Shown here one piece after another: positions 2,590-51,242 of a stretch of DNA of 64,000 nt. The first letter of the stretch is position 1; each line of letters begins with the position of its first letter. Made by a program: the position numbers and the translations under genes. The stretch lies in the sequence record KU726251.1; one strand, written 5' to 3'. The notes under the pieces were generated by a model. It was not told the origin of the DNA. It did not search any database and saw only the letters and a program-made list of their open reading frames with translations.

Positions 2590-2662
2590 TTTCAGATATA
2601 TATTACCTAGGTGATAGAAGACAATCTATCAACTCAATCGACTATTAATCTAAAGGAGTATT
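2590..2662 (+). promoter_or_regulatory. Early promoter E1 with leader hairpin and conserved RBS leader
   Basis: TTTCAGATATATATTAC (contains the phiKZ early-promoter core TATATTAC), stem TGATAGA/TCTATCA, then AATCGACTATTAATCTAAAGGAGT. Confidence 0.8.
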
Positions 2663-2665
2663 GCC

Positions 2666-2809
2666 ATGTTAACTCGTAACCATAAACGTGCCATCTTTGC
2701 CATCGTTGCTGTTGTTGCTTTCGCGGTACTGTCTATCACTGTAACTCAAGATTACAATAAGTGTATCGATAACGGTAACTCTGTTGCCATGTGTACAGGT
2801 CGCGGCTAA
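2666..2809 (+). CDS. Small single-pass membrane protein (47 aa; not in ORF track)
   Basis: Strong RBS AAAGGAG; MLTRNHKRAIFAIVAVVAFAVLSITVTQDYNKCIDNGNSVAMCTGRG; the stop overlaps the next ATG. Confidence 0.8.
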   Translation: MLTRNHKRAIFAIVAVVAFAVLSITVTQDYNKCIDNGNSVAMCTGRG

Positions 2810-2991
2810 TGGACTTTTCTGATGCGCAGTTTGCCGAGTTCTTATCTCACCCGCGTGTTAAACGTGAGTGGGATAATCTCACTAACAGTGTTCGTCGTCA
2901 GGACGAAGAAGAAATCGTTCACGTTACCGCACAAGTCTTACTCGTCTCACCGACAGGTAATGTGTTTCCAATGCAGCAGGAGATTTACTAA
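2809..2991 (+). CDS. Hypothetical protein (60 aa)
   Basis: TAATG coupling at both ends. Confidence 0.7.
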   Translation: MDFSDAQFAEFLSHPRVKREWDNLTNSVRRQDEEEIVHVTAQVLLVSPTGNVFPMQQEIY

Positions 2992-3179
2992 TGGGTGTTT
3001 TAGTTAATTACGATGGTAAAAACGGAATCGTGCTTCGTGAAGTGGAAGATAACGAAACAGTAGAGGTGAATCCGCAAACCTCAGAACGCACATTTATCGT
3101 GGGGCCGAAAAGCGCACTACCGAAGCCGGACTGGAAAGAAGAGCTGGCGAAGTTCCGTGGGGAACTCGAGAAGAAGTAG
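2991..3179 (+). CDS. Hypothetical protein (62 aa)
   Basis: TAATG coupling; followed by a terminator. Confidence 0.7.
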   Translation: MGVLVNYDGKNGIVLREVEDNETVEVNPQTSERTFIVGPKSALPKPDWKEELAKFRGELEKK

Positions 3180-3190
3180 TATAGATAATT

Positions 3191-3220
3191 TAATACCACC
3201 TACGGGTGGTATTATTTTTT
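3191..3220 (+). terminator. Intrinsic terminator
   Basis: TAATACCACC-tacg-GGTGGTATTA plus T tract. Confidence 0.8.
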
Positions 3221-3231
3221 GCCTAAGGAAC

Positions 3232-3654
3232 ATGAAAATGATTAATGAGAAGCTCCAAAAGTATTTAAAGAATGACACCGACTGGATGGTTCTTGACCAG
3301 TACGGACGATTTGTTCCGCTATCCAAGGATTCCCCTATACCCCGTGACAAGGCGATTTATATTCCTGACGGTAAGGGCGGTTATCGTTTCTGGGAAGGCC
3401 AGGAAGTAAAAGAGGAAATGTTCTACATGGAGCCGAAGTTCCGTGCAGCGTTCCCATCGAAAAATATCAACGGCTATGTTTACAACGCAATTCCGCCGAT
3501 TACGCATCCTAACTTTGAGGTTGTGAACTACCCCGCAACTGTTCTGGATTGGCAACGTGCCATTAGTGAACACTACACGATTCCGCTTGAAGGTGTTTAC
3601 TTCCCATTCCGTGATATTAGTTTAGATGACTTTATTAACTCTCTTAAGGACTAA
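3232..3654 (+). CDS. Hypothetical protein (140 aa)
   Basis: RBS AAGGA before ATG 3232, in frame with track ORF 3157. Confidence 0.7.
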   Translation: MKMINEKLQKYLKNDTDWMVLDQYGRFVPLSKDSPIPRDKAIYIPDGKGGYRFWEGQEVKEEMFYMEPKFRAAFPSKNINGYVYNAIPPITHPNFEVVNYPATVLDWQRAISEHYTIPLEGVYFPFRDISLDDFINSLKD

Positions 3655-3658
3655 AAAA

Positions 3659-4519
3659 ATGTACAGCATTACTGATTTTATCAAAAGTTCAGATTTCCCC
3701 CTACCTCCCGACCACGAAGTATTGGCTAGCGATCCGTTAACCGATGCGGCCATTGTCCAGCTGGACCGCGACAAACGTCGTACTTACGTCGTGTTGGTCG
3801 AAGGGCAGAGCTACGGCCTGTCTTCTTACGACCTGGAGCAGCAAGAGCGTTTCCTCGATGAAAACCGCAAAACGTCAATGTATAGCGCTATCTCGCGCGC
3901 GTTGTGCAAGGTAATGGCAACCATTACAGACAGCAAAAAGCGTATCGCTGTGCTGCAGGGTATCAATGCGCTAACGACCAAAATCCAGCAACTTGAAGGT
4001 TTCCATTGCCCACGATTGGAAGCCGCACAGAAGGATGCTAAGGGCGATGAGGCCATGGCGCTGTTTGAAGGCAATACTGTCTTTGCAACAGCTGAAGCTT
4101 GTTATCTCACCTATCCAACTTTTAACTATACGCCAATCAGCGACACCGTAGACGGGATTAAAGTAGAGAACGTTGTGCAGTGGGGTCGCGCAAATCTCAA
4201 GTTTGTGATGTCCCATGAAGAAGAAAATCAAGACGGCCTTGGCCAGAAGATTCAACGTTGGTTCACGGCGCGTTTGGACGCCGACTGGGAAGCGCATGTT
4301 AACGCAGAGCTTCGTAAGTTTCACGCGGTAGTCGCATTGTTAAAAGAAGACGCTCCCGCCCCGAAACAATCGAAGGCACCAGTGGTTGGCTGGACGTGTT
4401 CCGGCTGTAACCGCAACCATGTCGCTACCGTACCGAGAACCCATCGCTACACTTCGCAGACAATGAACATTGCTTGTCCGGCTTGCGGTAAGATCAACGA
4501 AGTTGATTATAAACCGTAG
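3659..4519 (+). CDS. Hypothetical protein with C-terminal Zn ribbon (286 aa)
   Basis: RBS TAAGGA; CSGC...CPACG at the C-terminus. Confidence 0.7.
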   Translation: MYSITDFIKSSDFPLPPDHEVLASDPLTDAAIVQLDRDKRRTYVVLVEGQSYGLSSYDLEQQERFLDENRKTSMYSAISRALCKVMATITDSKKRIAVLQGINALTTKIQQLEGFHCPRLEAAQKDAKGDEAMALFEGNTVFATAEACYLTYPTFNYTPISDTVDGIKVENVVQWGRANLKFVMSHEEENQDGLGQKIQRWFTARLDADWEAHVNAELRKFHAVVALLKEDAPAPKQSKAPVVGWTCSGCNRNHVATVPRTHRYTSQTMNIACPACGKINEVDYKP

Positions 4520-4525
4520 TAGTAC

Positions 4526-4564
4526 CCCTCTTACCTTCGGGTAAGAGGGATTTGTATTTATTTT
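4526..4564 (+). terminator. Intrinsic terminator (28 bp identical to 31679-31706)
   Basis: CCCTCTTACC-ttcg-GGTAAGAGGG plus T-rich tail. Confidence 0.85.
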
Positions 4565-4567
4565 CCG

Positions 4568-4606
4568 AAAAGAAAATAAAAGGCGCTCTCTCCCGAAGGA
4601 GAGAGC
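4568..4606 (-). terminator. Minus-strand intrinsic terminator
   Basis: GCTCTCTCC-cgaa-GGAGAGAGC (UUCG loop on minus) preceded by an A tract. Confidence 0.7.
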
Positions 4607-4632
4607 TTATTCACATCCACTTAGAGGTTAAC

Positions 4633-4779
4633 ATGAATACCTTTATGCAACAACTGCGTCAGCAACAGCTGAAACAAGTCGCTTTTCAACAACGTCTGCA
4701 AGAGGTTACCCGCCAACCGCAGACTTCCACCCGTACCATTAAAGGACTAGGAGGTGAGATAATACTCAACAAGAGATAA
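4633..4779 (+). CDS. Gln-rich microprotein (48 aa)
   Basis: RBS GAGG; MNTFMQQLRQQQLKQVAFQQRLQEVTRQPQ...; host-optimised codons. Confidence 0.6.
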   Translation: MNTFMQQLRQQQLKQVAFQQRLQEVTRQPQTSTRTIKGLGGEIILNKR

Positions 4780-4922
4780 CAGGAATATTTGCCTGGAATA
4801 ATTATACCCGAGTGCTAGAACACTCGGGTAATTCCACGCATATAAATAGTTCGTCGTATTTTTTTTGATCTCGGCAGGACGCATAAACTGCCCGTAGGGG
4901 AGCCTAAGCTCCCCAGTGTTCG

Positions 4923-6485
4923 TTAGAACAAATCATCACCCATTCCACCGGTGAAGAAGTTGATAGACGACGCTGTTACGGTTTCTTCTTTATCACAATC
5001 CCAAGGCAGGATGCCTACATCCTGGAAAGGTATCACTGTGTAGTGATAAGATTCTTTAGTATCGATAATGGTGCGGTGTTTACCGCGTTGAACTTCTAAG
5101 AAGCTATGGCCGTTGACCACACGCTTGTTAAAATACATTTCACCATCGGCCTCGTTATCAAGGCTCGAACAACTATCGTAAAGACCACGACCAGGTAAGT
5201 TCTTACAGAAGCCTACCGGGTCTAACGCTTTTAAGCGCTTACCTTCTGGGGAAATCTGGTGTGGGGCAATTAAGAACCCACGGTTGCGTACCACTTGAAT
5301 GTTACGAGCAATACGATAAATTTCTTTGATATCACTCCCGGCAATACCGTTGCCGTGTCCTGCTTTGCTGATTGTGCCTAAGTAGTCTGCGCGAATGCCA
5401 ACAACATGATAACCGCGACGACGTAAGTCGAGAATAAGGTCGTTGATGTAGTGCACTTTAAAATCGGAGTTGGTGTGCTTTTGGAAAACGTAGTCCCAAC
5501 CGTTTGCGCGAATCTTACCACAGAGGTAATCAGACATTGCTGTTGTGTGTGCTAACTTCTCTTCAGCGGTCGCATCTTGTGAAATGGTCATCTGTGGAAC
5601 TTGTCCTTCAAAATGACCGTACAGAGCTTGATAGCCGTAAGCTAAGTTAACGTCGAGTTCGTTTTCTAAACTCAAGTCAAGAATAATTGGTTGCAGTGTG
5701 CCCTTCACATCCGCCATTACTTTCTCAGGCGTGTTGAAGATAGGAATCGATAGGCTCAGCAAGAGACTGAACAAAGACTTACAGTTAAAAGGTAACGCTG
5801 GCATTAGCCACAGTTCTTCGGTAATCCCTTTGTTACAACCGAGCATTTGGTTAATGGCTTTCCAGCCCGTCTGCAAACCATTACCTGCAGCTTTCTTGTT
5901 AATCGAGTCGAACACTTTAACAAACGGAGCACGATTATCTGTAACCAGCTCACCGACCAATGATGGAATCTTATTATGAGAGCGTTCACCGAACGTAGAT
6001 AACGCCTCTTTGAGTTCGAGCACTGCGGTGTTCAGATCAACACGTGTCTCAGTTCCATTCAATGCTCCGAACGCGCGACCCATTTTTGTTTTGAGTTCGA
6101 CGCTCTGTAAACATTGACGTAATTGGAAATAATATTGAGACAGTTGTCGATTAAGATGCTCGGTACGTTTGTCTTCTTCCTCGGGCAAATCGTCTTCGAG
6201 GAATTTGGTAATCGTATCGTATAGAGGACGTACTTGAGTGGTGGCCAGCTTCAAGCGCTTCATAACGCTCGCGTGGTCGTATTCCATGCCGCCGTCTATG
6301 ATAGATGTGATAATGTCCTTGATCTCGATGAGTGCAAAGCGCTCTTCGCCATCTTCCGCATATTCCGGAAGCTTGATCTGCATCAGAACTTTTCTTATGA
6401 CATCATGATCCTTGCTAGGGTCCGTCAGCATAGATTCTGTATACAGTGCGGCTAAGGCGGTTATCAACATCATTTTACTATTCAT
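4923..6485 (-). CDS. dnaB: SF4 (DnaB-like) replicative helicase, phiKZ gp118-type
   Basis: TGWKAINQM (H1 region), degenerate Walker A PALPFNCKS, SLENE, Walker B IRADYL, PHQIS, QRGKHR; divergent upstream of the capsid gene as in the phiKZ group. Confidence 0.85.
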   Translation of the reverse strand: MNSKMMLITALAALYTESMLTDPSKDHDVIRKVLMQIKLPEYAEDGEERFALIEIKDIITSIIDGGMEYDHASVMKRLKLATTQVRPLYDTITKFLEDDLPEEEDKRTEHLNRQLSQYYFQLRQCLQSVELKTKMGRAFGALNGTETRVDLNTAVLELKEALSTFGERSHNKIPSLVGELVTDNRAPFVKVFDSINKKAAGNGLQTGWKAINQMLGCNKGITEELWLMPALPFNCKSLFSLLLSLSIPIFNTPEKVMADVKGTLQPIILDLSLENELDVNLAYGYQALYGHFEGQVPQMTISQDATAEEKLAHTTAMSDYLCGKIRANGWDYVFQKHTNSDFKVHYINDLILDLRRRGYHVVGIRADYLGTISKAGHGNGIAGSDIKEIYRIARNIQVVRNRGFLIAPHQISPEGKRLKALDPVGFCKNLPGRGLYDSCSSLDNEADGEMYFNKRVVNGHSFLEVQRGKHRTIIDTKESYHYTVIPFQDVGILPWDCDKEETVTASSINFFTGGMGDDLF

Positions 6486-6499
6486 GGAGCATCCTTAAA

Positions 6500-7024: not shown

Positions 7025-7036
7025 GGTAAACTTGAA

Positions 7037-9412: not shown

Positions 9413-9438
9413 TTTATAGATAGATATTATCTTAGGGA
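9413..9438 (+). promoter_or_regulatory. Early-type promoter E2
   Basis: AGATAGATATTAT-ctta-GGGA fits the 8-copy consensus. Confidence 0.65.
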
Positions 9439-10200: not shown

Positions 10201-10219
10201 AACCCGTGCCCAAAGTAAT

Positions 10220-10243
10220 CTGAGATAGATATTATCTACGTGA
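10220..10243 (+). promoter_or_regulatory. Early-type promoter E3
   Basis: AGATAGATATTAT-ctac-GTGA. Confidence 0.65.
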
Positions 10244-24798: not shown

Positions 24799-25188
24799 AT
24801 GATGCGTGCTGTATTAGCTGTGTTTATAATTTGCGTTACTACGTCAGTATACGCGTTTACTGTTCAGGACTTCCCGCAATACAAACCAATGTGGGAAACT
24901 GACGCACCTGTGAAATTCAGCGACAAAGATGAACCAGTCGTGACGGTGGAAAATGGTGAGTTTGCCGTGGTTAACTACGGACGTTCTGAACTGTGTCCAG
25001 GTGGTGGCTTTTATCTCGTTAACACAAAGCGCAAGACGTACCAGCCAATAGATGCGGGTACGTGTTCGTCGAAAGTTAAAGCGACAATTGCCCCGTCAGT
25101 ACGAACACACTGCAGAGTTAATAACCTACGGTTAACTTTTTGGGTAGGTAAAGAAATTTCCGCGCGGTATCCTTTGTACGATTACTAA
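24799..25188 (+). CDS. Secreted/periplasmic protein with signal peptide (129 aa)
   Basis: MMRAVLAVFIICVTTSVYA-F signal peptide, RBS GAGG, three Cys in the mature part. Confidence 0.7.
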   Translation: MMRAVLAVFIICVTTSVYAFTVQDFPQYKPMWETDAPVKFSDKDEPVVTVENGEFAVVNYGRSELCPGGGFYLVNTKRKTYQPIDAGTCSSKVKATIAPSVRTHCRVNNLRLTFWVGKEISARYPLYDY

Positions 25189-28024: not shown

Positions 28025-28487
28025 TGAAAATTGTTTTTGTCACCAAGCCCAACTCTCCGTATGGAAAGAAATACTACGCGGACTTGTTAGGACTACACAA
28101 CAAGTTATACGACGATCAGAAAATAAAACTTGCCGACTTAAACGGTCGTGAAGGGTTTAATCAAATCTCAAAACTGGAGGAGGTTTGGGGTGAAGGTACG
28201 CTGTGCGCTTGCGCCGTTGATGACCGTGGTGTGGCTGTTGGTTTCATCACCTTTGGCTACACCAAAAAGGGACAACGTTTCCTCTGGGTATATAACTTCT
28301 TTGTAGACGAATCGGTTCGCTCTCAAGCGTCGGTCATGAGTTAATTGAAGCCGTAGAAAATTACGGCAAATCAAAAGGCTGCGCATGGATGCAGCTTAAC
28401 GTGCTCGGTAATAACGACCGTGCTATTGCGTTTTATGAACGTTTCGGTTTTCGAACTGAATACCAGGATATGGTAAAGGAGCTTTAA
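28021..28487 (+). CDS. GNAT acetyltransferase (about 155 aa), one apparent missing G at about 28327
   Basis: Adding one G restores VDESVRSQGVGHELI...LNVLGNNDRAIAFYERFGF. Confidence 0.85.
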
Positions 28488-28488
28488 C

Positions 28489-29097
28489 ATGGTAGCTGTC
28501 CGCAGCGTGCCGCATCAGACTGGCTCGCGATATACTTTTTGTGTAAAGCGTTTTGGGGCAAGAAATCGCCCTGGTTGGAAGGTGGTACGTGCGATGGGAC
28601 AGTTCTGGCAAATACCACCCGGCACGTTAAAATATTTTTCAGTAGACAGAATAATCCGGTTCTTAAACGCGGCTGACCCAAGTCAACGCTCCAGTTTTAT
28701 GGCAGGGATTGTTTGTCGTCCCGATGGGAAAACACGCGATGCTACCACTCGTGGAATCTACTGGACAGGACAGAACGCGTTTCAGGTTGGCTTACCTTGC
28801 CTGAAGTGTGAAGTGACACCGTTTAATGGTCCCTACGCCGATGCGCACTTCACCGGTATCTTTGTGTCGTTCCCAGACGACCCGTCTTTAAACTACTTTT
28901 TATCAGTGGACAAAGACGTCAGTATTGATACCTTTTACAAATACTTGTTGTTTTACAGCCGGTATATCCGCGTGACTCCTGTGCATGAAGATTGGTATTA
29001 TAAAAATCCCTTGAACTATGGGAGGGACAGGAGACTAGAAGGATGTTCTATCGAGAGCTTCAACTCTGTACCGCAGCGCTCCATGGCGCTAATGTGA
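28489..29097 (+). CDS. Hypothetical protein (202 aa)
   Basis: RBS AAGGAG. Confidence 0.7.
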   Translation: MVAVRSVPHQTGSRYTFCVKRFGARNRPGWKVVRAMGQFWQIPPGTLKYFSVDRIIRFLNAADPSQRSSFMAGIVCRPDGKTRDATTRGIYWTGQNAFQVGLPCLKCEVTPFNGPYADAHFTGIFVSFPDDPSLNYFLSVDKDVSIDTFYKYLLFYSRYIRVTPVHEDWYYKNPLNYGRDRRLEGCSIESFNSVPQRSMALM

Positions 29098-29414
29098 GCA
29101 AGAACGGGGACCTGGAAGACGTCGCGCAAGCCTTACGGGCTGTGTCGGAGGTTGACCAAGTCGACATCGACGCTAAGTATTTAGGCGGCGGTGTAAAGCG
29201 TATTCAGTTGACCGTGCGAGCCAAACATGGCAGCTGCTCGTTACATTTTCGAGTCAGTGCGGATTATTTCCTGGTACTGCGCTCCACATTCAGTCACGAT
29301 GGTCGGACTCACCGGGTTCGGTGGATGCACGACATTACTAAATTTGGCTACCCGCTTGCAGAACAACGTAAAGTCGTACATGACTTTATGGCTGCAGTCG
29401 TTGCGGGGTTTTAA
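29094..29414 (+). CDS. Hypothetical protein (106 aa)
   Basis: GTG start overlaps the previous TGA (GTGA). Confidence 0.65.
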   Translation: MSKNGDLEDVAQALRAVSEVDQVDIDAKYLGGGVKRIQLTVRAKHGSCSLHFRVSADYFLVLRSTFSHDGRTHRVRWMHDITKFGYPLAEQRKVVHDFMAAVVAGF

Positions 29415-29423
29415 GGGGAGACT

Positions 29424-30023
29424 GTGATGTCTGAGATGATTCTCGATTCGCTGTTTTTGATTACGGTTGCAAACATCAATAAAAACGGCAATCTTCCAGA
29501 ATACGTAGACATAAGTCGTCATGGCTTTAAGCGTCGTTATCAAATCGGTAAGGTACTAGAGATTGCCTGCTTAGTAACGAACATGCGTAGACCGGTGGAA
29601 GGCTGTAGCGTTAAACATGCACAGATGATACTCGGACGTGCTATTTCAGAAGTACGTCGTAAGCGTCGTCGTGCACCGTATCGCTTTTATCCTAACTCCA
29701 CCAAACAGGTGGTGGGTGAAGGTGAAGGTGTGGTTGATTTGCGTGAGGCCAGTTGTAATGTAGGTGGTATTGCGCGTGACTGGTTAATGAGCATTATCAG
29801 TAAGCATCCACGCACACCTACGCCGCAAGAAGGACAGGCGGTACTCGCACTTATGCGTAAGACCCATTTGGTGATCACCGATACACCGAATCAGGCAGCA
29901 CGAATGCAGCACTATTTGGCGTGTCGTGGCTTTACCACACTCGCAGTGCCATCAGAATACGCAACTGATATTAAACTTCCGCCAGTCCCCGAGTGGTCTG
30001 AACCGAAAGTTGATCATCAGTGA
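29424..30023 (+). CDS. Hypothetical basic protein (199 aa)
   Basis: RBS AAGGGGAG; ends before a terminator. Confidence 0.7.
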   Translation: MMSEMILDSLFLITVANINKNGNLPEYVDISRHGFKRRYQIGKVLEIACLVTNMRRPVEGCSVKHAQMILGRAISEVRRKRRRAPYRFYPNSTKQVVGEGEGVVDLREASCNVGGIARDWLMSIISKHPRTPTPQEGQAVLALMRKTHLVITDTPNQAARMQHYLACRGFTTLAVPSEYATDIKLPPVPEWSEPKVDHQ

Positions 30024-30028
30024 GTTAT

Positions 30029-30066
30029 ACCCACTCCTTCGGGAGTGGGTCGACTCTATTGTTTTT
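30029..30066 (+). terminator. Intrinsic terminator
   Basis: ACCCACTCC-ttcg-GGAGTGGGT. Confidence 0.7.
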
Positions 30067-30088
30067 CGGATAGATATTATTTTAGGGA
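30064..30088 (+). promoter_or_regulatory. Early-type promoter E4
   Basis: TTTCGGATAGATATTAT-ttta-GGGA. Confidence 0.65.
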
Positions 30089-30180
30089 GACGTACAAAAT
30101 TTACGTTTCATCCTTAGCATATGCTAGAAGCCGTTGTGAGTCGGTTAAAACTCACCAACTTAAACTAAGAGAGAAATACC

Positions 30181-30939
30181 ATGACTGTTAATACTACGAA
30201 GAAAGAGTTCCTGTCCGTCCCCACTGCCTGTGGCGAATATCGTTATGTATTTTTGTATAACGAAGAGATGATCGGTAAGGGCGGGATGCCGATTATGATA
30301 GAGCATAAGCTCATCAGCGCTAAAACAGGCGGTACCGTTGTACATGGCACGACTGAGTTCTTCGCAACTAACGCAACGCGGGAAGATGTTATTCGCGGGT
30401 TGCTGAAAGCACTGCGTGAAGTCTCAGCCAGGATGTTCTTTAAACACATCGCCCGTAAGCCTGAACTCATCCCCGCGTGGAAAGAGTTCGACTTAGAAGC
30501 ACTGCGTGAAGCTGCACCACGCTATGTCTTCATTGAAGAATGCATCAATGCGTATTTTAAAGACGTGATGCAAACCGAGCGATTGGTAAATAAAGCATCC
30601 GAAACAGGAAATCGTTTCTTCCGCAGTGTCAAATTTAAAGAAGACCTCCGGGCTAACTTCAACGATATTGAACTGCGTGTCACCCGCCGCATGACACTGC
30701 TGCGTCCTGAATCAGATACACCGCAGGCCATGTTGTCTTATTCCTTGGCCCCTTCTGCGTTGTTTAACAAACGCGAAGGCTTCAGTGTAATGTCGCTCAA
30801 TTTCACTAACAAGTACGCATTAGGGGAATGGCCGTCATTAAATGCATTCTTCAAAAGTCCGGGCATCAGGCCGGTCATCGAAGCATGGATTGAGCACACC
30901 TGGACACCAGAAATGAAGAACCGCAAGGCTATCGAGTAA
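30181..30939 (+). CDS. Hypothetical early protein (252 aa)
   Basis: Single-gene unit between E4 and a terminator. Confidence 0.8.
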   Translation: MTVNTTKKEFLSVPTACGEYRYVFLYNEEMIGKGGMPIMIEHKLISAKTGGTVVHGTTEFFATNATREDVIRGLLKALREVSARMFFKHIARKPELIPAWKEFDLEALREAAPRYVFIEECINAYFKDVMQTERLVNKASETGNRFFRSVKFKEDLRANFNDIELRVTRRMTLLRPESDTPQAMLSYSLAPSALFNKREGFSVMSLNFTNKYALGEWPSLNAFFKSPGIRPVIEAWIEHTWTPEMKNRKAIE

Positions 30940-30952
30940 TAACATCTAATAT

Positions 30953-30990
30953 CAGGCATCCTTCGGGGTGCCTGTTTTATTTTTTTTTCT
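30953..30990 (+). terminator. Intrinsic terminator
   Basis: CAGGCATCC-ttcg-GGGTGCCTG plus T tract. Confidence 0.85.
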
Positions 30991-31013
30991 TTACGTTTGG
31001 TCGCTATATTGTG
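30990..31013 (+). promoter_or_regulatory. Bipartite motif TTTAC-N15-TGTG
   Basis: Upstream of the dTMP kinase gene. Confidence 0.55.
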
Positions 31014-31676
31014 ACACCACTACAATTAATTAAACTTTTGGGGAAGAATAAAATGTTAAACTCAGTGGCGCTGGATGGTCCGGACTTTTCTGGCAAATCA
31101 ACACTCGCGAAAATGATTCAAGCGATGTTGCGCTCCGCTGGCGTTAATGTCATCATCGTCAATCACCCGACGAATACCACTGAAGCCGGTATTAGTGCAC
31201 GTTCTCTGGTTATCCAGCACGCTTCTAACGAACGCATTGCTAAAGCGATGTGTCTGGATTTCCAATACACGATGGATTTCGTTGTACCAGAGCACGATGT
31301 CGTTATTTTTGACCGTTTTTGTCAATCGACTATTGTCTACCAGGGCGTCGATGGTAAAGGGGAAGTTTTCCGTTCACGGGTATTAGACCACATTAACGCA
31401 CCGAAACTTTACGTGGCAACCGATGTATCCTACGAAACCGCCACAGAACGCTTTAAGAAGCGCGCAGAGGCCCAGGGCAAGAACTGGGATGATGAGGTAC
31501 TGACAGCGAAGTATCTGCGCTCACAGACTGATTGGGACGCGTTACGCGACCACTACCGTTTTGCTTTCCACATCACCACAGATGGCGGCGATAAGTTCCC
31601 GCTGATGCGCGTTACGGCTGACGACGATATAGCGTTACAAGCCGCACGTATCGTTGAACGTATTCTGGCAGGTTAG
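31011..31676 (+). CDS. tmk: Thymidylate (dTMP) kinase
   Basis: P-loop LDGPDFSGKST, FDRF motif, IVYQG; the true start may be the ATG of MLNSVAL. Confidence 0.85.
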   Translation: MTPLQLIKLLGKNKMLNSVALDGPDFSGKSTLAKMIQAMLRSAGVNVIIVNHPTNTTEAGISARSLVIQHASNERIAKAMCLDFQYTMDFVVPEHDVVIFDRFCQSTIVYQGVDGKGEVFRSRVLDHINAPKLYVATDVSYETATERFKKRAEAQGKNWDDEVLTAKYLRSQTDWDALRDHYRFAFHITTDGGDKFPLMRVTADDDIALQAARIVERILAG

Positions 31677-31682
31677 TTGTAC

Positions 31683-31720
31683 CCCTCTTACCTTCGGGTA
31701 AGAGGGTATTGTCTTTTTTA
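31683..31720 (+). terminator. Intrinsic terminator (duplicate of 4526)
   Basis: CCCTCTTACC-ttcg-GGTAAGAGGG. Confidence 0.85.
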
Positions 31721-31740
31721 CAGATCAGAACAGTCCTATG
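31717..31740 (+). promoter_or_regulatory. Bipartite motif TTTAC-N15-TATG
   Basis: TTTAC 31717-21, TATG 31737-40. Confidence 0.6.
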
Positions 31741-31763
31741 CTTTTTGCTTCCAGTCCACTAAA

Positions 31764-31835
31764 TTTCAGATATATATTACTTAGGTGAGAGTTACTACTA
31801 AACTCTCTAATCGACTATTAATCTAAAGGAGTATT
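31764..31835 (+). promoter_or_regulatory. Early promoter E5 with leader hairpin and conserved leader
   Basis: TTTCAGATATATATTAC; stem GAGAGTT/AACTCTC; 27 bp leader identical to E1. Confidence 0.8.
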
Positions 31836-31838
31836 CTA

Positions 31839-32204
31839 ATGCGTTTTAAACATCAAACCGTTGTGTTGGCAAAGAAAGCGTTTTTGGTTCGTCTTTCTTA
31901 CATTATTACTCGTGTCACTGCGAAGGACGTTACGCAGAAAGACATTGCGTTATTAGTAGGCTGCTCACCGTCACAAATATCTGCGATTAAAAATGAACGT
32001 GAGAAGGCCGTGACTATCGAAACATTGATGCGGGTTGCTGATACACTGCGCCTGAATTACGAAATCGTCTACCGTTCTATCAACGGTAAATGTCGTCATA
32101 GCTTTAAAATTGAATCCTGCATCGATTACATGAACAACTGTCCTATCCGGGTACGAGAAACAGGACTTAAAGTCATGGCACGTAAACCTTCTGCAGTAAT
32201 GTAG
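31839..32204 (+). CDS. XRE/Cro-family helix-turn-helix protein (121 aa)
   Basis: TQKDIALLVGCSPSQISAIKNE...VTIETLMRVADTL. Confidence 0.85.
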   Translation: MRFKHQTVVLAKKAFLVRLSYIITRVTAKDVTQKDIALLVGCSPSQISAIKNEREKAVTIETLMRVADTLRLNYEIVYRSINGKCRHSFKIESCIDYMNNCPIRVRETGLKVMARKPSAVM

Positions 32205-32215
32205 GGAGCAAACGT

Positions 32216-32602
32216 ATGAATTGGTTTGTAAATGGTATCACCCGTCGCGTGATGACGGAAGAGGATGATCGATGTAAACATCTTAAAGTGGGCTCTATAG
32301 CCCCGCGCTATACGGCAGAGTGCGACCCATGGGGCCGCGAAACGTATTACATGTGCGAAGACTGCTGGGAAAAACTGCAGGCTGCAATTGCGGCGGAAGA
32401 AGTGGTCTGCGACGACTGCAAAGGTACCTTCCCGAAACGAGATACCGTTGAATGGAAATGGTACGACTTTGACCCCAGACAAGGGGATAAAGAACTTTGT
32501 ATCTGTAATAACTGCGTGTCTTTACCGACACATTTAAACCGTGTAGAGAATGACCGTCGGGCATTTGAACACGACTTTCCAGAAGCAACTTTCTGGGATT
32601 AA
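32216..32602 (+). CDS. Cys-rich Zn-finger protein (128 aa)
   Basis: CKH, ECD, CEDC, CDDC, CNNC. Confidence 0.7.
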   Translation: MNWFVNGITRRVMTEEDDRCKHLKVGSIAPRYTAECDPWGRETYYMCEDCWEKLQAAIAAEEVVCDDCKGTFPKRDTVEWKWYDFDPRQGDKELCICNNCVSLPTHLNRVENDRRAFEHDFPEATFWD

Positions 32603-32628
32603 CTAGTGTAAACCTTAAGGAGTATATC

Positions 32629-33285
32629 ATGGCGAAGGCCCCTAAAACTGTAGCAAAAGATTCAACGGCAAGCAGCGCGGTTAAATCCACAAAGTCGCGT
32701 ACCACTGAATCCACGCGTACATCTAGCATTCCGAAGCCGGATGTGATTGTACCGATCAGCGAGCGCCTGAAAACGATTCACATCGAACGTGAATTTCCGA
32801 TTGACCTTGGTCAGGAAATCGTTGCGGTTAATCTTGGTAGTGATGTCCGCTTTACTATCTATAAAGGCGCGCATCTGAACAACATGGTGCTAACCCGCGG
32901 TGATGAAGTTATCGGTCTGTCTCGTTACGACACGCAAATCGAAAACATCTATCCGGTGTTTGCAGTAGCGATGTTGCGTTTGTTCATGCAGGATAAAGCC
33001 GACCTTTGTGGCCAGCTTGCGGGAATGGCTGATCGTGTTGGCCATATTCTGCCGACGCTGGTGAAACTGTACCCGGTTACGATTGATGTGGCGTTCACTA
33101 CGGTAGACAACAACCACGGCTATATCGTGCTGACCAAAGACGGTAAAGTTATCGCTGGTAATCTGACTGATAACGAAGTGCAGAAGCATATGGACAAATT
33201 TGCGTTCATGGTGAATCGCCTAGTGCACGTCAGTGTCAAACATTCCGAAACTTGGACGGCGCTTGTCTCCAAACCGGAACTGTAA
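32629..33285 (+). CDS. Hypothetical protein with S/T/K-rich N-terminus (218 aa)
   Basis: RBS TAAGGAG. Confidence 0.8.
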   Translation: MAKAPKTVAKDSTASSAVKSTKSRTTESTRTSSIPKPDVIVPISERLKTIHIEREFPIDLGQEIVAVNLGSDVRFTIYKGAHLNNMVLTRGDEVIGLSRYDTQIENIYPVFAVAMLRLFMQDKADLCGQLAGMADRVGHILPTLVKLYPVTIDVAFTTVDNNHGYIVLTKDGKVIAGNLTDNEVQKHMDKFAFMVNRLVHVSVKHSETWTALVSKPEL

Positions 33286-33287
33286 TC

Positions 33288-33318
33288 ATTAAGGGGTCTT
33301 CGGACCCCTTAATTTTTT
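33288..33318 (+). terminator. Intrinsic terminator
   Basis: ATTAAGGGGTC-ttcg-GACCCCTTAAT plus T tract. Confidence 0.85.
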
Positions 33319-33323
33319 GTCTT

Positions 33324-33347
33324 TTTACGCATTATCCTCATGTTGTG
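33324..33347 (+). promoter_or_regulatory. Bipartite motif TTTAC-N15-TGTG heading the GNAT-dam operon
   Basis: TTTAC 33324-28, TGTG 33344-47. Confidence 0.55.
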
Positions 33348-33374
33348 ACAGCAATACCTTTTGAGGGCATTACA

Positions 33375-34372
33375 ATGAAAACTGTGGCTAAATTGTTTCG
33401 CACCAGCATCCGCACTGCCGAGTTCCGAAATAACGTCGGTACCGATACTGTACGAGCACGCCGCCTAAAAGAGTTTCTAAAGGACGAGACTTATTCTGTT
33501 TACGTGGTGAAGAATAAAGAAACCTGGGAGGGTTATTTAGTGGCCACCTATCGACACGGTGACCCTACACTAACCTGTCACTATTTTGAGGAGTTTGTAC
33601 CTGGGGCGTTCGATAAAGTTGGTTTGGCCCTTGTGCTCGACCATACCGGATTCGAATATATGTCGTGTCCAGCACCTACTGACGATGTTGAACAAAAACT
33701 GGTCGAAAAAGGGTTTGTTCTTTCAGATATCGTTTGGGCATGTCATTCTAAACTGTTTGACAAAGTAATCACCGCATCGGAAATCAAGATTATTTCTGGT
33801 GATGCATACGCAGAACTTACCAAGGAAGATAAAGACGTTATCCTGAATTTGATTAGCGGTGCAATTTGCGAAGAGCTAGAATACGATGTGCGTGGCTATT
33901 ATACGCACATTGGTCCGTTAGCAGAAACAGTAATAGCAAGAATTCAGCACGCTAATGTGGAGACTGCAATTTGGCGAGACGGTCATGATATCGTCGGTAT
34001 TGCCAGATGCGCTTGGTTACACCAGGCGTCGTTGAACTTTCTGGTTTAACCGTTGCACCCACGCACCGTAAACGTGGCATTGGTCGCCGGCTAATGGGCG
34101 CGCTATTCGATTTCGCACAACGTCATTCCGACCAAGTCTATATTGAAACAGCTGCTGATAATAATCCAGCAAATCACCTGTATGGCAACATCTTACGTTG
34201 CAAGCAGGTACTGCGTACACTAACGTTGAAACGCGATCCTGAACTTATTAGCTGGAAACGGGTGAATGGAAACCGCGCCGATCGTGTGCTGAAAGAAGAA
34301 CCTAGCTTTCCGGTGGAGACTACAACCAGGCTGACTATTAGTGATATGTTTCAATCTGGCATGAGAGGGTGA
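33375..34372 (+). CDS. Tandem (double) GNAT acetyltransferase (about 332 aa), one apparent missing base at about 34011
   Basis: Degenerate N-domain ending LVEKGF; C-domain GIARC-(A)LVTPGVVELSGLTVAPTHRKRGIGRRL...NNPANHLY after the frame repair. Confidence 0.8.
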
Positions 34373-34378
34373 TAACGG

Positions 34379-35197
34379 GTGATAAGACCAATTTTAAAAT
34401 GGATGGGTGGTAAGAGTCGCGTACTTCCCGAGCTGCTACAGGTGCTTCCAGATGCTGAGTATTTCGTTGAACCGTTTGTGGGTGCAGGGTCAGTGTTTTT
34501 AAACACTAAATACCCGAACTATATTCTCGGCGACACGAACCCAGACTTAATCGAGTTACTGACCATGGCGCGCGATCGTCCGGAAGCGCTGATTCTGGAA
34601 GCAAAGGCGCTCTTTGCAAATGGGACGGACCGCGGTCTGTACATGAAACGACGCGAGGAATTTAACAGCGAAGCAACCACGGGGAAACCTAATCTCCAGC
34701 GCGCCGCGATGTTCCTGTATCTTACACGTCATGGTTACAATGGTTTGTGCAGATACAATCAGTCGGGTGGGTTTAACGTGCCTTATGGTCAACACCCGAA
34801 CGGTGTCTATTTCCCTGAAGAGGAAATTCTGGCGTGGGCAAAACGTTGTTCGGAAACCAACGTCGAGCTGCTCTGCGCGGACTTCCGCGATATCCTAAAT
34901 AAATGCCCATCTAACGCTGTGATATACGCTGACCCGCCCTATATCCCTCTTTCGGATACGGCTAAACACGCGCAGTATCACAGCAAAGAATTTTCACAAG
35001 CTGACCACCGCGAGTTAGCGAAACTTTTAAAACAACAAGCTGCCGATGGCAATAAGGTCGTTCTGTCAAACGCAGATACGTTACTCACACGCGATATTTA
35101 TTACGGCTTTACTTGGCGCGAAGTTCAGGTAGGTCGATATATGTCTGCGGATGCGAATAAGCGTAAAGCGGTGACGGAGCTAATCGGCACCTTATAA
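34379..35197 (+). CDS. dam: Dam-like N6-adenine DNA methyltransferase
   Basis: LKWMGGKSR, EPFVGAGSV, RHGYNGLCRYN..G.FNVPYG, YADPPY; closely EcoDam-like. Confidence 0.92.
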   Translation: MIRPILKWMGGKSRVLPELLQVLPDAEYFVEPFVGAGSVFLNTKYPNYILGDTNPDLIELLTMARDRPEALILEAKALFANGTDRGLYMKRREEFNSEATTGKPNLQRAAMFLYLTRHGYNGLCRYNQSGGFNVPYGQHPNGVYFPEEEILAWAKRCSETNVELLCADFRDILNKCPSNAVIYADPPYIPLSDTAKHAQYHSKEFSQADHRELAKLLKQQAADGNKVVLSNADTLLTRDIYYGFTWREVQVGRYMSADANKRKAVTELIGTL

Positions 35198-38338: not shown

Positions 38339-38363
38339 TTTCAGATAGATGTTATTTTACTGA
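38339..38363 (+). promoter_or_regulatory. Early-type promoter E6
   Basis: TTTCAGATAGATGTTAT-ttta-CTGA. Confidence 0.65.
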
Positions 38364-47031: not shown

Positions 47032-47036
47032 GTGTA

Positions 47037-47079
47037 TACCAGCTATCCTTCGGGGTGGCTGGTACGCTTTATTTTATTT
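47037..47079 (+). terminator. Intrinsic terminator
   Basis: TACCAGCTATCC-ttcg-GGGTGGCTGGTA plus T-rich tail. Confidence 0.8.
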
Positions 47080-47101
47080 CAGATAGATGTTATCTCAGTG
47101 A
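47077..47101 (+). promoter_or_regulatory. Early-type promoter E7
   Basis: TTTCAGATAGATGTTAT-ctca-GTGA. Confidence 0.7.
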
Positions 47102-47158: not shown

Positions 47159-47491
47159 ATGTCCAAAGTCTATCACATTGCGGTATTGCGTCAGGCAACT
47201 GACCTTGAAGGCGACGGTGAACTTCGAATGCAGGAAGCCATTCTGAGCACCGTTAAAGAACTTAACCAAGCAAACAATTTCGATGCACGCTTCGAGGCGC
47301 TGCCTGTAAGCCGTAACGCTTTCTACGGCAGTCAAATCCTGGCAACCCAGTTTGCGATGGCTTTAAGTGACTTGCGCAATAATCCTAGTCCTGAAACCGC
47401 GACGAAGATGAACAAACTGTCGTTATGGATGAATAACCTGGATGCCCCCGCAACATCCATTGTAAATGGTTTGGGGGTGGTTAATGGGTAG
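47159..47491 (+). CDS. Hypothetical early protein (110 aa)
   Basis: RBS TAAGGAG. Confidence 0.75.
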   Translation: MSKVYHIAVLRQATDLEGDGELRMQEAILSTVKELNQANNFDARFEALPVSRNAFYGSQILATQFAMALSDLRNNPSPETATKMNKLSLWMNNLDAPATSIVNGLGVVNG

Positions 47492-47819
47492 AGTAATCCG
47501 TGTTGCCAGACCAATGCGTCTCAATAGGACGCCGATGATAAATCGCGATATCAGTGAAGCTGTAAAACTGTTGTCGAATATCGACGGTTACACCTTTAAA
47601 GTGATAACACTGTACGACTACCCAGAAGGCAAAGTTCCGCAAGAGGCGCTGGATAAATTCGTTAATGTATTAGACGATTGCCTTAAGAGCCCAACGGACG
47701 TAAATCTTATCAAACTAAACACCATGTCCCATGAGCTGTACCGCCTGCGTAAAATGGGCATTCACGCTCGCATCGGTAAAGGTGACCAAACGTTGGCCGA
47801 ATACTGGGCTAAACAATAA
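47484..47819 (+). CDS. Hypothetical protein (111 aa)
   Basis: Overlap-coupled to the previous gene. Confidence 0.7.
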   Translation: MGRVIRVARPMRLNRTPMINRDISEAVKLLSNIDGYTFKVITLYDYPEGKVPQEALDKFVNVLDDCLKSPTDVNLIKLNTMSHELYRLRKMGIHARIGKGDQTLAEYWAKQ

Positions 47820-47846
47820 GCTATTTTAAATCCTAAGGAGCATTAA

Positions 47847-48365
47847 GTGAATATTACCATGAACCTGTACACCAAACGGGAACGTAACGTTTTAGAATCT
47901 GGCGTTGCCCCAGAAGTATTGGCTGCGGGGGATATTAGTATCGACCCACTGAAAGTGAAAGTCGCGGAACTGTTCCCTCGTGATGAATGGGACATCTGGT
48001 ATTTCCGTTGTTCGTCGGTATTGAATGCAATCAAACAACTGTCTGATTATCAGCCTGGCCCGTACATCGGTACCTGGCACTGGTACGTCCCTCGCACCCC
48101 GAACTTCCTCTACTTACACGATGACGATAAACGTACTCATATTCGCACTGTAGCGACGCCTGAGCGTTTGGAGCGTTATCTGGGGTTAATCCACGACCGT
48201 CCTCGTAACGAGCTGCAAAGCATCGTAGAAGTGCTCAGACAGGTACCTTTAGATGGTATCCTGGAACTGGACATGAAAATTGCTGATCGGCCTCGCCACT
48301 ACTGGGAATTTTCCTGGGTAGATGCGAAATACGAAAACCATAACGTTATCTATCTGAAGCGTTAA
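47847..48365 (+). CDS. Trp-rich hypothetical protein (172 aa)
   Basis: RBS TAAGGAG. Confidence 0.75.
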   Translation: MNITMNLYTKRERNVLESGVAPEVLAAGDISIDPLKVKVAELFPRDEWDIWYFRCSSVLNAIKQLSDYQPGPYIGTWHWYVPRTPNFLYLHDDDKRTHIRTVATPERLERYLGLIHDRPRNELQSIVEVLRQVPLDGILELDMKIADRPRHYWEFSWVDAKYENHNVIYLKR

Positions 48366-48375
48366 GGGGGACAGG

Positions 48376-48696
48376 ATGTTGAACTGGTTACTTGCGCTGA
48401 TTAACAAGCGACAAAAACAACTGTACGAAGAAAACCGAGAATTGGCTGCCGCTAACCGTCGTGTACAGGCCGATAACTTGCAGTTAAGACACGACCTCGC
48501 GAAACTGGGTGTTAACGCGAGTAGGCTTTGTACGCACATTAGCCGGTGCCACGATATCATCGAACGTATTGGACACTACCATCTTACGTCTCCTGCGCGT
48601 CGCGTCTATGACGCGGCCGTCCAGGGATTGAAAGATACCAGGAATGTGTACGACGAGATGTTAGAAGAGTTTAGCAAACGTGAGGATAAATACTAA
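48376..48696 (+). CDS. Coiled-coil hypothetical protein (106 aa)
   Basis: RBS AAGGGG. Confidence 0.7.
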   Translation: MLNWLLALINKRQKQLYEENRELAAANRRVQADNLQLRHDLAKLGVNASRLCTHISRCHDIIERIGHYHLTSPARRVYDAAVQGLKDTRNVYDEMLEEFSKREDKY

Positions 48697-49078
48697 TGGA
48701 AATGCCAACGAACACCGACTTAGCACTGGCAATCGAACACATGAAAAACCATCAGCTGACGTTACTGAATGCAAGCACAGAAGGGCAACGTCAAGGGTAT
48801 GCGCTCGTTGCAAAAGCAGCGTTAGAACTTAACAAGATTCTACTCGCTAAACTTTACGGGCTGGAAAACAGCGTGCTCCATGCGTCGCACCTGGCGAAGC
48901 CAGCGAGTTAGTTACGAATGTGCGGCTGTATGCAAGTCGTGAAATGGAACGTTTAACCAACGAATGGAATGTCCAGTGTAACGGCGAGCGTGCTGATAAA
49001 GATCCGCGTAAAGTCGCACTGACGCCGGGCGTGTACATCAAAGACGGCACCATTGACGAATACAGCGGATTTAACTGA
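48696..49078 (+). CDS. Hypothetical protein, either 71 aa or about 127 aa if a -1 shift near 48860-48905 is repaired
   Basis: The -1 frame is open 48851-49078 with protein-like sequence and no RBS of its own. Confidence 0.5.
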
Positions 49079-49101
49079 TCGGCGGATAAGGGTGATTGTG
49101 A

Positions 49102-49527
49102 ATGGTAACCATAGACGTAGCTATCTCTATCGAGCTTCAACGCATCGGTGTAGGTACACTAAAACTTCGTTATCGTGATTTACCGCATTACAACAAGATG
49201 TTTGATGTTGGGGTGATAAAGTTTTATAACCGGTACGGGCCAAGAGAACTATGTCTATGGTTTGTCGAGTTAGCGATAACTTATGGCGAGTTTTATCATC
49301 CTAATGTACCGCATGTCGAACATGTGTCAAGAGGGCACCTGGAAACTTCCAGAGAGTTCTATCAGCGATTGTATGGCGCGATGGAGGAGTCCGCACCCAT
49401 CGACTACGACGTACCACCTGAACTGTTATTAATCGACCATGAAGGAGAAGCCGGTGTCTATTTCATTACAGGGACTGACTATTCACGAGATTCAGAAATA
49501 TTTACTCGAGGGCGGGAAACTGACTGA
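49102..49527 (+). CDS. Hypothetical protein (141 aa)
   Basis: In-operon ORF. Confidence 0.6.
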   Translation: MVTIDVAISIELQRIGVGTLKLRYRDLPHYNKMFDVGVIKFYNRYGPRELCLWFVELAITYGEFYHPNVPHVEHVSRGHLETSREFYQRLYGAMEESAPIDYDVPPELLLIDHEGEAGVYFITGTDYSRDSEIFTRGRETD

Positions 49528-49759
49528 CGACTATCAAACCGCAGATATGTTGCTACAGTCATTTGTACCGTTACGTGCTGAGTATTACGAAATCGCGTTC
49601 CTGGGCGATGAATATTGTGTCCGCACGCAAGGGCGCGAATACGAAGCAGTTCGCGTACCGCGCACACTCGGCGGGGTGATGATACTTATCGCTAATATCG
49701 AAGCACTCAATGCGAAATGTGCGTTATACATCGCACAGGGAGGTCGCAATGGATTTTAA
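49439..49759 (+). CDS. Hypothetical protein (106 aa)
   Basis: Protein-like; overlaps the previous ORF by 89 bp, so the start is uncertain. Confidence 0.6.
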   Translation: MKEKPVSISLQGLTIHEIQKYLLEGGKLTDDYQTADMLLQSFVPLRAEYYEIAFLGDEYCVRTQGREYEAVRVPRTLGGVMILIANIEALNAKCALYIAQGGRNGF

Positions 49760-49824
49760 GTGGGAACCATTATCGTTAGCAGAAGTTCGTAACAGAATCG
49801 ATAGAGCTATTGCAAGGAGAAAAC

Positions 49825-50226
49825 ATGTTCGGCCTGTTTCAGGAGAAAAAACAATTGCGTCGCCAATTAGAAATACTGGAATTGGAACTCAGCCTCTCAA
49901 AGACTGAGTTGGAAATTTCGAAAGAAGCGTGGAAGAGAAATCTCGATGAATCTTTCGAAGAACGCCGTAAGCTTACACGATTACTTTCTGAGGAACAGTC
50001 TAAGAACCGGAAACTCGAAGACGAGCTACGAGATGCCCGACGAGATGCGGATCTGCGTGATAAGATGTTGGGATGGAACCTGGGTGCCCTAATCTATTTC
50101 ATAGAGCAGCGTTGGGAACCAAAGACACTCCTTGAGTTACTCTATGAAAAACTCTCCTGCGTAGGTAAACGTTCTGCGGCCATCGAGTATTTTCGTAGTC
50201 ACGGTTTCGAGGTAAAAGATGAGTAA
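49825..50226 (+). CDS. Coiled-coil hypothetical protein (133 aa)
   Basis: Strong RBS AAGGAG before ATG 49825. Confidence 0.7.
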   Translation: MFGLFQEKKQLRRQLEILELELSLSKTELEISKEAWKRNLDESFEERRKLTRLLSEEQSKNRKLEDELRDARRDADLRDKMLGWNLGALIYFIEQRWEPKTLLELLYEKLSCVGKRSAAIEYFRSHGFEVKDE

Positions 50227-50269
50227 AAATAACAGTTTGTTTTCCCTTTAACCATGGAAACCACAAGCA

Positions 50270-50602
50270 ATGAAAACGAAACGAACGTCAGTCGTGTTCC
50301 AGCAGGGACGTGCGCGACTCTATAAAGGTAAGAAACTCATTGGTACATTCGAGTATCAAGAGAACCAGCTAATCGTCGATGTTATCATTCTCGGTTTAGC
50401 AGCGAAGTGGTCACCTTTAAAAAGGACATTAGCCAAACGTGCGATGGAGAAGCTCCGCCGCGACCAGATAAAAGCATTTAACAAACCTTTTCCACTTGAG
50501 GCGTACCGAGTACAGCCTCGTTGCGCACACATCACGACGTCACCCATGATTGCTAAGCTCGATGTGACCGATCTGAGAGAAATGTTAACTGTACGGCCGT
50601 AG
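50270..50602 (+). CDS. Basic hypothetical protein (110 aa)
   Basis: In-operon ORF. Confidence 0.65.
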   Translation: MKTKRTSVVFQQGRARLYKGKKLIGTFEYQENQLIVDVIILGLAAKWSPLKRTLAKRAMEKLRRDQIKAFNKPFPLEAYRVQPRCAHITTSPMIAKLDVTDLREMLTVRP

Positions 50603-50629
50603 TGTCATAGCCCCTTAAGGAGTATTTAA

Positions 50630-51070
50630 ATGTTAAAGCCACGCAAACAGAAAAGATTACAGTTTGTCAAAATAGTACATCCGGAGTCCCGTCGTGTTAC
50701 AGGTGGACGTCTCTACGTGGGTAAACACCGTAGTCGTCTTATCAGCTGGTCGGCAATGGCCAACGTAGCCACCCAACTCCAGGCAATGGTTGAAGACCGT
50801 TGTCAGTTAAAAGGGGACTTCTTTCAAGAGAAGAAACCCTACCGTGATATCTTCCGTACACTGAAAGCGTGCTGGGTACTCAGTTGGGTGCCTGGCCGCG
50901 AACAACTTTATTTTCTGCGTAAGTTCCCACGCCCTATGCCGAAAGAAAACATTAGCGTTTTCTTAGACAAACTAAAACGTTTTAATGGCATCGGCATTAA
51001 CGCTAATAAAGAGCAAGTTTCTGCTACAGTAGCAGCCCGGAAACTCTTACGCGATTACGTGGCCGATTGA
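50630..51070 (+). CDS. Basic hypothetical protein (146 aa)
   Basis: RBS TAAGGAG. Confidence 0.7.
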   Translation: MLKPRKQKRLQFVKIVHPESRRVTGGRLYVGKHRSRLISWSAMANVATQLQAMVEDRCQLKGDFFQEKKPYRDIFRTLKACWVLSWVPGREQLYFLRKFPRPMPKENISVFLDKLKRFNGIGINANKEQVSATVAARKLLRDYVAD

Positions 51071-51110
51071 CTTGAGAGGCACTTATCCCAAAAGCGGTCA
51101 ATAAAGCAGC

Positions 51111-51148
51111 ACCCTACTCCTTCGGGAGTAGGGTTTCTTCTTTTTTTG
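51111..51148 (+). terminator. Intrinsic terminator
   Basis: ACCCTACTCC-ttcg-GGAGTAGGGT plus T tract. Confidence 0.85.
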
Positions 51149-51168
51149 TCTAGTCCGATTACAATTAT

Positions 51169-51242
51169 TTTCAGATATATATTACTTAGGTGAGAGTTAA
51201 CCATTAACTCTTATCTAATCGACCATTATCTTAAGGAGTTTT
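51169..51242 (+). promoter_or_regulatory. Early promoter E8 with leader hairpin and conserved leader
   Basis: TTTCAGATATATATTAC; stem AGAGTTAA/TTAACTCT; AATCGACCATTATCTTAAGGAGT. Confidence 0.8.

Follow-up and report, generated by a model that had tools for sequence, protein, structure and literature searches.

What keeps a hairpin in place behind a phage promoter when its sequence is free to change? The question is posed by a 64,000-nucleotide stretch of DNA (hereafter the window, whose first base is position 1 for all coordinates not assigned to the record), which is identical in sequence to bases 62001-126000 of KU726251.1, the genome of the phage SEGD1. Here, three cassettes join a predicted early promoter to a short stem-loop, a conserved leader and the start codon of a small gene. 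SEGD1, to which megablast assigns the window at 100% identity, belongs to the SPN3US-like jumbo phages (genus Seoulvirus), which serve as the genetic model of nucleus-forming jumbo phages in enterobacteria and whose transcription signals are unmapped. We find that the element is very likely a selected RNA hairpin on early transcripts, whereas its early timing, exact start site and stabilizing function are what we infer. The whole SEGD1 genome of 239,461 bp was used and compared with seven relatives that represent five genera and were likewise taken as whole genomes (SPAsTU, Stratton, Huxley, Caitlin, Kwan, CR5 and Phobos), with phiKZ and Goslar added as outgroups. Class counts and z statistics refer to six of these genomes, and extra sites were taken from IMG/VR contigs.

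All three cassettes lie on the + strand and open with the same promoter core, TTTCAGATATATATTAC (copy 1, 2590..2606; copy 2, 31764..31780; copy 3, 51169..51185). Exact matches to the 25-nt pattern TTTCAGATATATATTAC-NN-AGGTGA lie at 2590, 31764 and 51169, against 0 in 100 shuffles, which confirms the three positions named in a preliminary description of this DNA. The core is an early consensus of the type read by virion RNA polymerases (vRNAPs), of the same motif class as the TATATTAC-N4-KTGA sites of phiKZ, from which the preliminary description had rightly taken it to be known. It is followed in copy 1 by the conserved CTAGGTGA (2607-2614) and then by the hairpin (2612..2631), a 7-bp stem pairing 2612-2618 with 2625-2631 around a 6-nt loop. 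The copy 2 hairpin (31787..31807) pairs 31787-31793 with 31801-31807 in a 7-bp stem with a 7-nt loop, and that of copy 3 (51192..51212) has a 9-bp stem of 51192-51200 with 51204-51212, a closing G.U pair and a 3-nt loop. The block described downstream, AATCGACYAT...AAGGAGT, is indeed common to all three copies. It comprises a leader box (AATCGACTAT at 2636-2645; 31809-31818; AATCGACCAT at 51217-51226) and a Shine-Dalgarno sequence (AAGGAG at 2653-2658; 31826-31831; 51233-51238), and the cassettes end at the annotated ATG codons of SEGD1_067 (2666), SEGD1_104 (31839) and SEGD1_139 (51246). Beyond the hairpin, the leaders are predicted to be mostly or wholly unpaired. In copies 2 and 3 this includes the Shine-Dalgarno sequence; in copy 1, folding leaves 2636..2668 mostly open, but a single weak helix touches that sequence.

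The stems are as first described, but the divergence of the segments between promoter and leader had been overstated: copies 2 and 3 share the arms GAGAGTT / AACTCT and differ mainly in the loop. Independent compensatory change inside the window is confined to copy 1 (two pairs) and to a fourth site, E4. This last has a variant promoter ending in TTAT (30064-30080, + strand), matched by our covariance model (below) at 25.8 bits, and a hairpin in the same register as in copies 1-3, pairing 30087-30094 with 30102-30109 and including one G.U pair. The E4 hairpin does stand at the equivalent place, but the TTAT class to which E4 belongs shows no enrichment as a whole. When the complete leaders of the three copies are folded singly, none is significant (z -0.5 to -1.0); copy 3 reaches z -4.4 over its first 38 nt. 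The significance of the hairpin comes from its fixed position and from covariation across many sites and genomes, not from the folds of single leaders.

The promoter motif comes in two classes. The TTAC class, GATA[TG]AT[AT]TTAC, has 36 sites, seven of them in SEGD1 and three of those within the window, usually with YTAGGTGAG next; the TTAT class, GATAGATATTAT, which includes the E4-like sites, has 46. Every site of either class is on the gene strand. In a fold test on the 34 nt beginning 4 nt after TTAC, the TTAC class gave a mean z of -2.56 and a mean minimum free energy (MFE) of -7.6 kcal/mol, with z below -1 at 86% of the sites (p = 3e-6 against 3,000 random genomic windows). A further 19 distinct sites from IMG/VR gave a mean z of -1.98, and in CR5 and Phobos the hairpins are weaker, yet kept. 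No hairpin enrichment is seen in the TTAT class (mean z -0.04) or after the motif at the 33 TATATTAC sites of phiKZ (mean z -0.19), and the 10 Goslar sites, too few to judge, have a non-significant mean z of -0.67. Given enrichment behind TTAC and none behind TTAT or in phiKZ, the coupling is specific to the SPN3US-like clade and, within it, to the consensus promoter class, and the hairpin is no general need of vRNAP transcripts. Across sites, the stems range from 5 to 11 bp and the loops from 3 to 19 nt; the base of the stem, GAGA / UCUC, is conserved, while the loop sequence and the inner stem vary.

That this variation is compensatory, and thus a mark of selection on the hairpin, had been proposed from the window, and the proposal holds across the seven relatives and the IMG/VR sites. 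In an alignment-free swap test, the 5' arm of each site was joined to the downstream part of every other site: own arms fold at -7.63 kcal/mol and swapped ones at -4.20, 0 of 20,000 permutations reach the observed mean, and the effect is present within every genome. The 36 sites have 22 different 5' arm octamers, each with its own matching 3' arm. An alignment of all 44 sites made with MAFFT (A1) was structurally inconsistent, the loops varying in length, and was dropped. The alignment retained (A2) is ungapped, anchored on the promoter only, and holds 12 sites that share a helix axis; 94% of its cells are paired versus 75% in shuffles (0 of 500) and 39-55% in slid controls, and five of the seven stem pairs have changes on both sides. 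A covariance model over related genomes was the check set beforehand. Built from A2, it found 93 matches in 1.9 Mb (eight genomes), all in promoter orientation bar one partial antisense match on a strongly palindromic stem. In the model-fitted alignment of 92 sequences, 92.9% of cells are paired versus 69.7% in shuffles, with 106 versus 36 cells showing change on both sides. The position of copy 1, between a gp066 homolog and a helicase, has one TTAC promoter in all seven relatives, with stems that differ from one to the next (GAGAGA/TCTCTC in Stratton, GTGAACGA/TCGTTTAC in Kwan). Comparison of sequences gives strong support to selection on the pairing, rather than the sequence, of the hairpin.

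The preliminary description spoke of a hairpin in RNA or in single-stranded DNA. An RNA structure is favored over a DNA cruciform, since 38 of 299 stem pairs are G.U pairs (with the G in the 5' arm in 36 of the 38) and the sense strand is more stable than the antisense at 49 of 63 sites (p = 3e-7), both of which fit a sense-strand RNA. The helix also registers with the promoter: it starts at offset 4-6 after TTAC in 33 of 39 sites, and its axis is nearly constant whatever the length of stem or loop (i+j of 31-33 in 27 of 39). Of the 35 helices extending to offset 7, 33 pair the G at offset 6, the first base of an invariant GA; the T preceding it is paired in 18 of 33, which is about chance. 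This break in covariation points to the G as the first transcribed nucleotide, as do a conserved T-G step that would put a pyrimidine at -1 and a purine at +1, the N4-KTGA tail of the phiKZ sites and published positions: PMC7598289 and PMC8244752 center motifs of the phiKZ type near -10, with a T-rich part upstream of -19, and the former gives about -10 relative to early start sites that were mapped. We therefore predict +1 at G2613, G31787 and G51192, 6 nt after TTAC, with an uncertainty of about 2 nt. Extension of the stems into the GT before the GA, looked for as a sign of an earlier start, is not counted as such, these bases pairing at about chance frequency. Counted from the predicted +1, unpaired 5' nucleotides number zero in 33 of 39 helices, one in two and two in four; with this start, the hairpin would be flush with the 5' end of the RNA.

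What might such a terminal hairpin do? Among the three roles put forward in the preliminary description, stabilization of the mRNA fits this anatomy best because the helix begins at the predicted +1 (for the other two, a signal for vesicle exit and a vRNAP recognition element, the data speak neither for nor against), and we think it somewhat more probable than its negation that the element is a 5'-terminal stem-loop stabilizing early mRNAs against host RNases. The cassette would then be a self-contained unit of early expression. An injected multisubunit virion RNA polymerase would read a T-rich stretch, AGATATATATTAC and then YTAGGT, and would start at the G of the invariant GA, whereupon the first ~20 nt of the RNA may immediately form a stem-loop of 6-11 bp that leaves the 5' end with no, or hardly any, unpaired nucleotides. 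An unstructured A/U-rich leader would follow, with the AATCGACYAT box at a fixed distance from a strong Shine-Dalgarno sequence and the start codon. With the triphosphate end buried in this way, RppH would be impeded, as would RNase E entering by its 5'-end-dependent route, so that the earliest and most abundant phage messages could last longer while the RNA decay machinery of the host is still intact.

There are parallels to this arrangement. The class III leaders of T7, with the phi10 5' stem-loop, start with GGGAGA, place a hairpin at the extreme 5' end and continue into a leader with a strong ribosome site. As in those leaders, a purine-rich, GAGA-type start here forms the 5' arm of a terminal hairpin; unlike them, the SEGD1 cassettes would serve a multisubunit virion enzyme and early genes, rather than a single-subunit polymerase and late genes, and their stem sequences vary between sites. 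The 5'-terminal stem-loops that stabilize the E. coli ompA and papA mRNAs (Emory 1992; Bouvet and Belasco 1992; as cited in PMC3997798) are likewise short hairpins of any sequence, with few or no unpaired 5' nucleotides and an accessible ribosome site; they belong, however, to single host genes, and the element described here is multicopy, coupled to a promoter and carried by a phage genome. Protection of early messages by the hairpin, if real, would oppose host RNA decay in cis, in contrast to the trans-acting inhibitor of phiKZ. In that phage, RNA decay is countered by the degradosome inhibitor Dip (PHIKZ037). No Dip homolog was detected in any SPN3US-like genome, which is weak evidence given how fast such proteins evolve, and which is weakly consistent with a solution acting in cis.

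RNA-seq contigs bear on copy 2. They derive from four runs of one study on a phage 98-99% identical to SEGD1 and were placed on 28500-34400. The unit upstream of copy 2 is closed by a terminator-like hairpin with a T-run (31683..31706, + strand), and the copy 2 transcription unit, genes 104-106, ends at another terminator-like hairpin (33288..33313, + strand). Contig depth is about 1,300-2,500 before copy 2 and 54,000-237,000 across genes 104-106; it is high from about 31850 to about 33230, at roughly 50-170 times the flanks, and drops at about 33230-33265, near the terminator at 33288. After E4 it rises from 82-941 to several thousand. A scan found no sigma-70-like promoter on the + strand at copy 2. 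Within 31674-31716, contigs in all four runs have loose ends flanking the terminator hairpin that precedes copy 2, which indicates that this hairpin sequence also occurs in another context in the phage or the sample.

Several points tell against a stabilizing terminal hairpin. Roughly 15-30% of the TTAC sites have a weak hairpin or none, and the TTAT class, including the promoter of the RNA polymerase (RNAP) beta/beta' operon, does without one, as do the early promoters of phiKZ. The A/U-rich leader would still be open to cleavage by RNase E entering directly. The start site is carried over from phiKZ by similarity of motif, with an uncertainty of some 2 nt, and the fragmentation at high contig depth sets in only about 65 nt past the predicted +1 of copy 2; contig depth moreover gives no starts, no strand and no true levels, and cannot rank genes. 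On the statistical side, the sites are interrelated as orthologs and paralogs, so that the p-values overstate their independence (all controls do point the same way), and the 92-sequence alignment was fitted to the structure of the model that had retrieved it.

The hairpin may instead act on transcription itself, by aiding promoter escape, by blocking backtracking or R-loops, or as a promoter-proximal pause or attenuator. Its fixed distance from the promoter, the nearly constant axis and the restriction to TTAC promoters would suit such a role, and so would the short U tracts into which several 3' arms run, the genomic copy at 164440 of the record that is followed by a true terminator, and the premature termination in 5' untranslated regions (UTRs) that is common in phiKZ and 201phi2-1. 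We nevertheless regard it as unlikely: phiKZ has vRNAP promoters of the same type without a hairpin, so that the enzyme family does not need one, the three copies in the window have no U tract after an A/U-rich and weak stem (-6 to -9 kcal/mol), and strong attenuation is not evident from the deep contigs over the genes that follow copy 2. A scan for intrinsic terminators over 31500-33600 returned only those at 31683 and 33288, and not the leader hairpin. Slightly less probable again, in our estimate, is a recognition tag for a phage or host factor, serving export from the early vesicle, ribosome recruitment or translational control. The tag would be carried only by the strongest early promoter class, its GAGA / UCUC base is conserved, and the early transcripts of these phages arise within a vesicle, from which they have to get to ribosomes (PMC13282480); a loop of 3-19 nt without conserved sequence and a free inner stem are, however, unlike a typical protein-binding hairpin, TTAT-class transcripts from a similar promoter lack the element, and no candidate binding protein was identified. 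The narrower version, in which a co-injected or host factor reads the tag for the release, export or preferential translation of the first, vesicle-made transcripts, strikes us as improbable to a further small degree; were it true, no earlier cis signal would be known for the passage of RNA out of the vesicle in nucleus-forming phages.

Two further explanations dispense with a function in the RNA. The palindrome could be a promoter element at the DNA level, a hairpin or cruciform of the kind seen in phage N4, and transcription would then truly begin further downstream, near the leader box. The virion RNA polymerase of N4 does use hairpin promoters (PMC4496689), the start site here is a predicted one and a conserved box does lie 3' of the hairpin. 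The two systems share a virion-carried polymerase and a hairpin beside conserved promoter bases. The N4 hairpin, however, is in DNA upstream of the start, with a stem of 5-7 bp and a 3-nt loop, and serves a single-subunit vRNAP. The SEGD1 element lies 3' of a -10-like motif and is far more variable, with stems of 5-11 bp and loops of 3-19 nt; its G.U pairs and strand asymmetry oppose a symmetric DNA structure, the polymerase genes in SEGD1 are annotated as multisubunit and beta/beta'-like, and in phiKZ the related motifs are found about 10 nt upstream of start sites that were mapped. The spacing of the leader box follows the start codon and not the hairpin, and the box also occurs without the promoter; together these features make an N4-like DNA element very improbable. 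Least credible, at a barely appreciable likelihood, is the absence of any selected function, with duplicated cassettes carrying palindromes that are kept perfect by quasi-palindrome (template-switch) correction. Arms common to copies 2 and 3 and to several paralogs are what duplication would leave behind. Against this stand the number of distinct arms, each matched within its own site, the syntenic sites that retain a hairpin in five genera while their sequences differ, the sister TTAT class without enrichment, and the G.U pairs, which template-switch correction would not yield.

In the searchable literature on phiKZ, 201phi2-1, AR9 and jumbo-phage polymerases, including a 2026 review, we found the promoter motif described and no mention of the leader hairpin, in agreement with the initial impression that the hairpin-plus-leader cassette had not been reported. 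What is gained is a 5' RNA element that covaries clade-wide and that phiKZ lacks, a start nucleotide predicted from where covariation stops, and a class of early promoters, probably the strongest, that can be read from sequence. The full cassette of promoter, hairpin, leader and ribosome site would also serve as a strong early expression module for engineering these phages.

The promoter of the three copies is best seen as the probable SPN3US-clade version of the phiKZ early promoter. The two have in common the TATATTAC core, an upstream T-rich/AGAT part, the N4-KTGA tail, a bias to the gene strand and small downstream genes of unknown function; they differ in that here a covarying hairpin accompanies the consensus class, as does, in Seoulvirus and Erskinevirus, a conserved leader box. 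In SEGD1, the + strand has 15 copies of the 13-mer core AGATAKATRTTAY and the - strand none (reversed control, 0/0); phiKZ has 33 forward and nine reverse TATATTAC sites that share the tail. At most sites, TTAC lies 50-67 nt before the start codon. The genes after the three copies are small and, except for gene 104 (an XRE/Cro-type helix-turn-helix), have no Pfam match; they resemble typical early host-takeover genes.

The leader box behaves as a separate module. TCGACYAT stands 26-31 nt before start codons, or 21-23 nt in some cases, and it is this distance that is kept, not that to the hairpin; AATCGACYAT is also found at genes with neither a TTAC promoter nor a hairpin. Seoulvirus and Erskinevirus carry the box frequently and Machinavirus less so; in Kwan, CR5, Phobos, phiKZ and Goslar it is all but missing. 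It goes with the ribosome site rather than the hairpin, which makes the cassette modular; our guess is that it is a translational enhancer. Outside the window, at 164435-164530 of the SEGD1 record, a TTAC promoter with its hairpin runs directly into a second, G+C-rich hairpin that carries a T-run, and only after this terminator-like structure come a leader box and gene 184, an order kept in SPAsTU. The resulting unit of ~55 nt looks like a small RNA or an attenuator.

The E4 leader (30087-30183, 97 nt to the ATG at 30181) is predicted to form three hairpins, with an MFE of -20.6 kcal/mol and z of -3.0; this longer, structured 5' UTR differs from the short open leaders of copies 1-3. Copies 1 and 3 have GC-rich inverted repeats upstream, seen by eye only. 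The stretches 28345-29042 and 33286-34402 have no annotated genes (locus tags 107 and 108 are missing) and no tRNA or Rfam match, and contigs cover both; in the window as a whole, no tRNA was found and Rfam gave 0 matches.

Other members of the TTAT class, TTTCAGATAGATATTAT-like and ending in TTAT or GTTAT, occur in the window at 9414-9430, 10219-10235, 38339-38355 and 47077-47093, besides that of E4. Outside it, the promoter at 28771 of the record lies 44 nt upstream of the RNAP beta/beta' operon. On the reverse strand of Goslar, there are promoter-like TTTCACGGCTATATTAC-YTANGTGA sites with an identical N4-GTGA tail, one of which is followed by a small hairpin and then a AATCGACTGT box. Finally, a TTAT-class motif lies within gene 032 (25029-25040 of the SEGD1 record, outside the window) and keeps that position in every relative examined, suggestive of an internal promoter.

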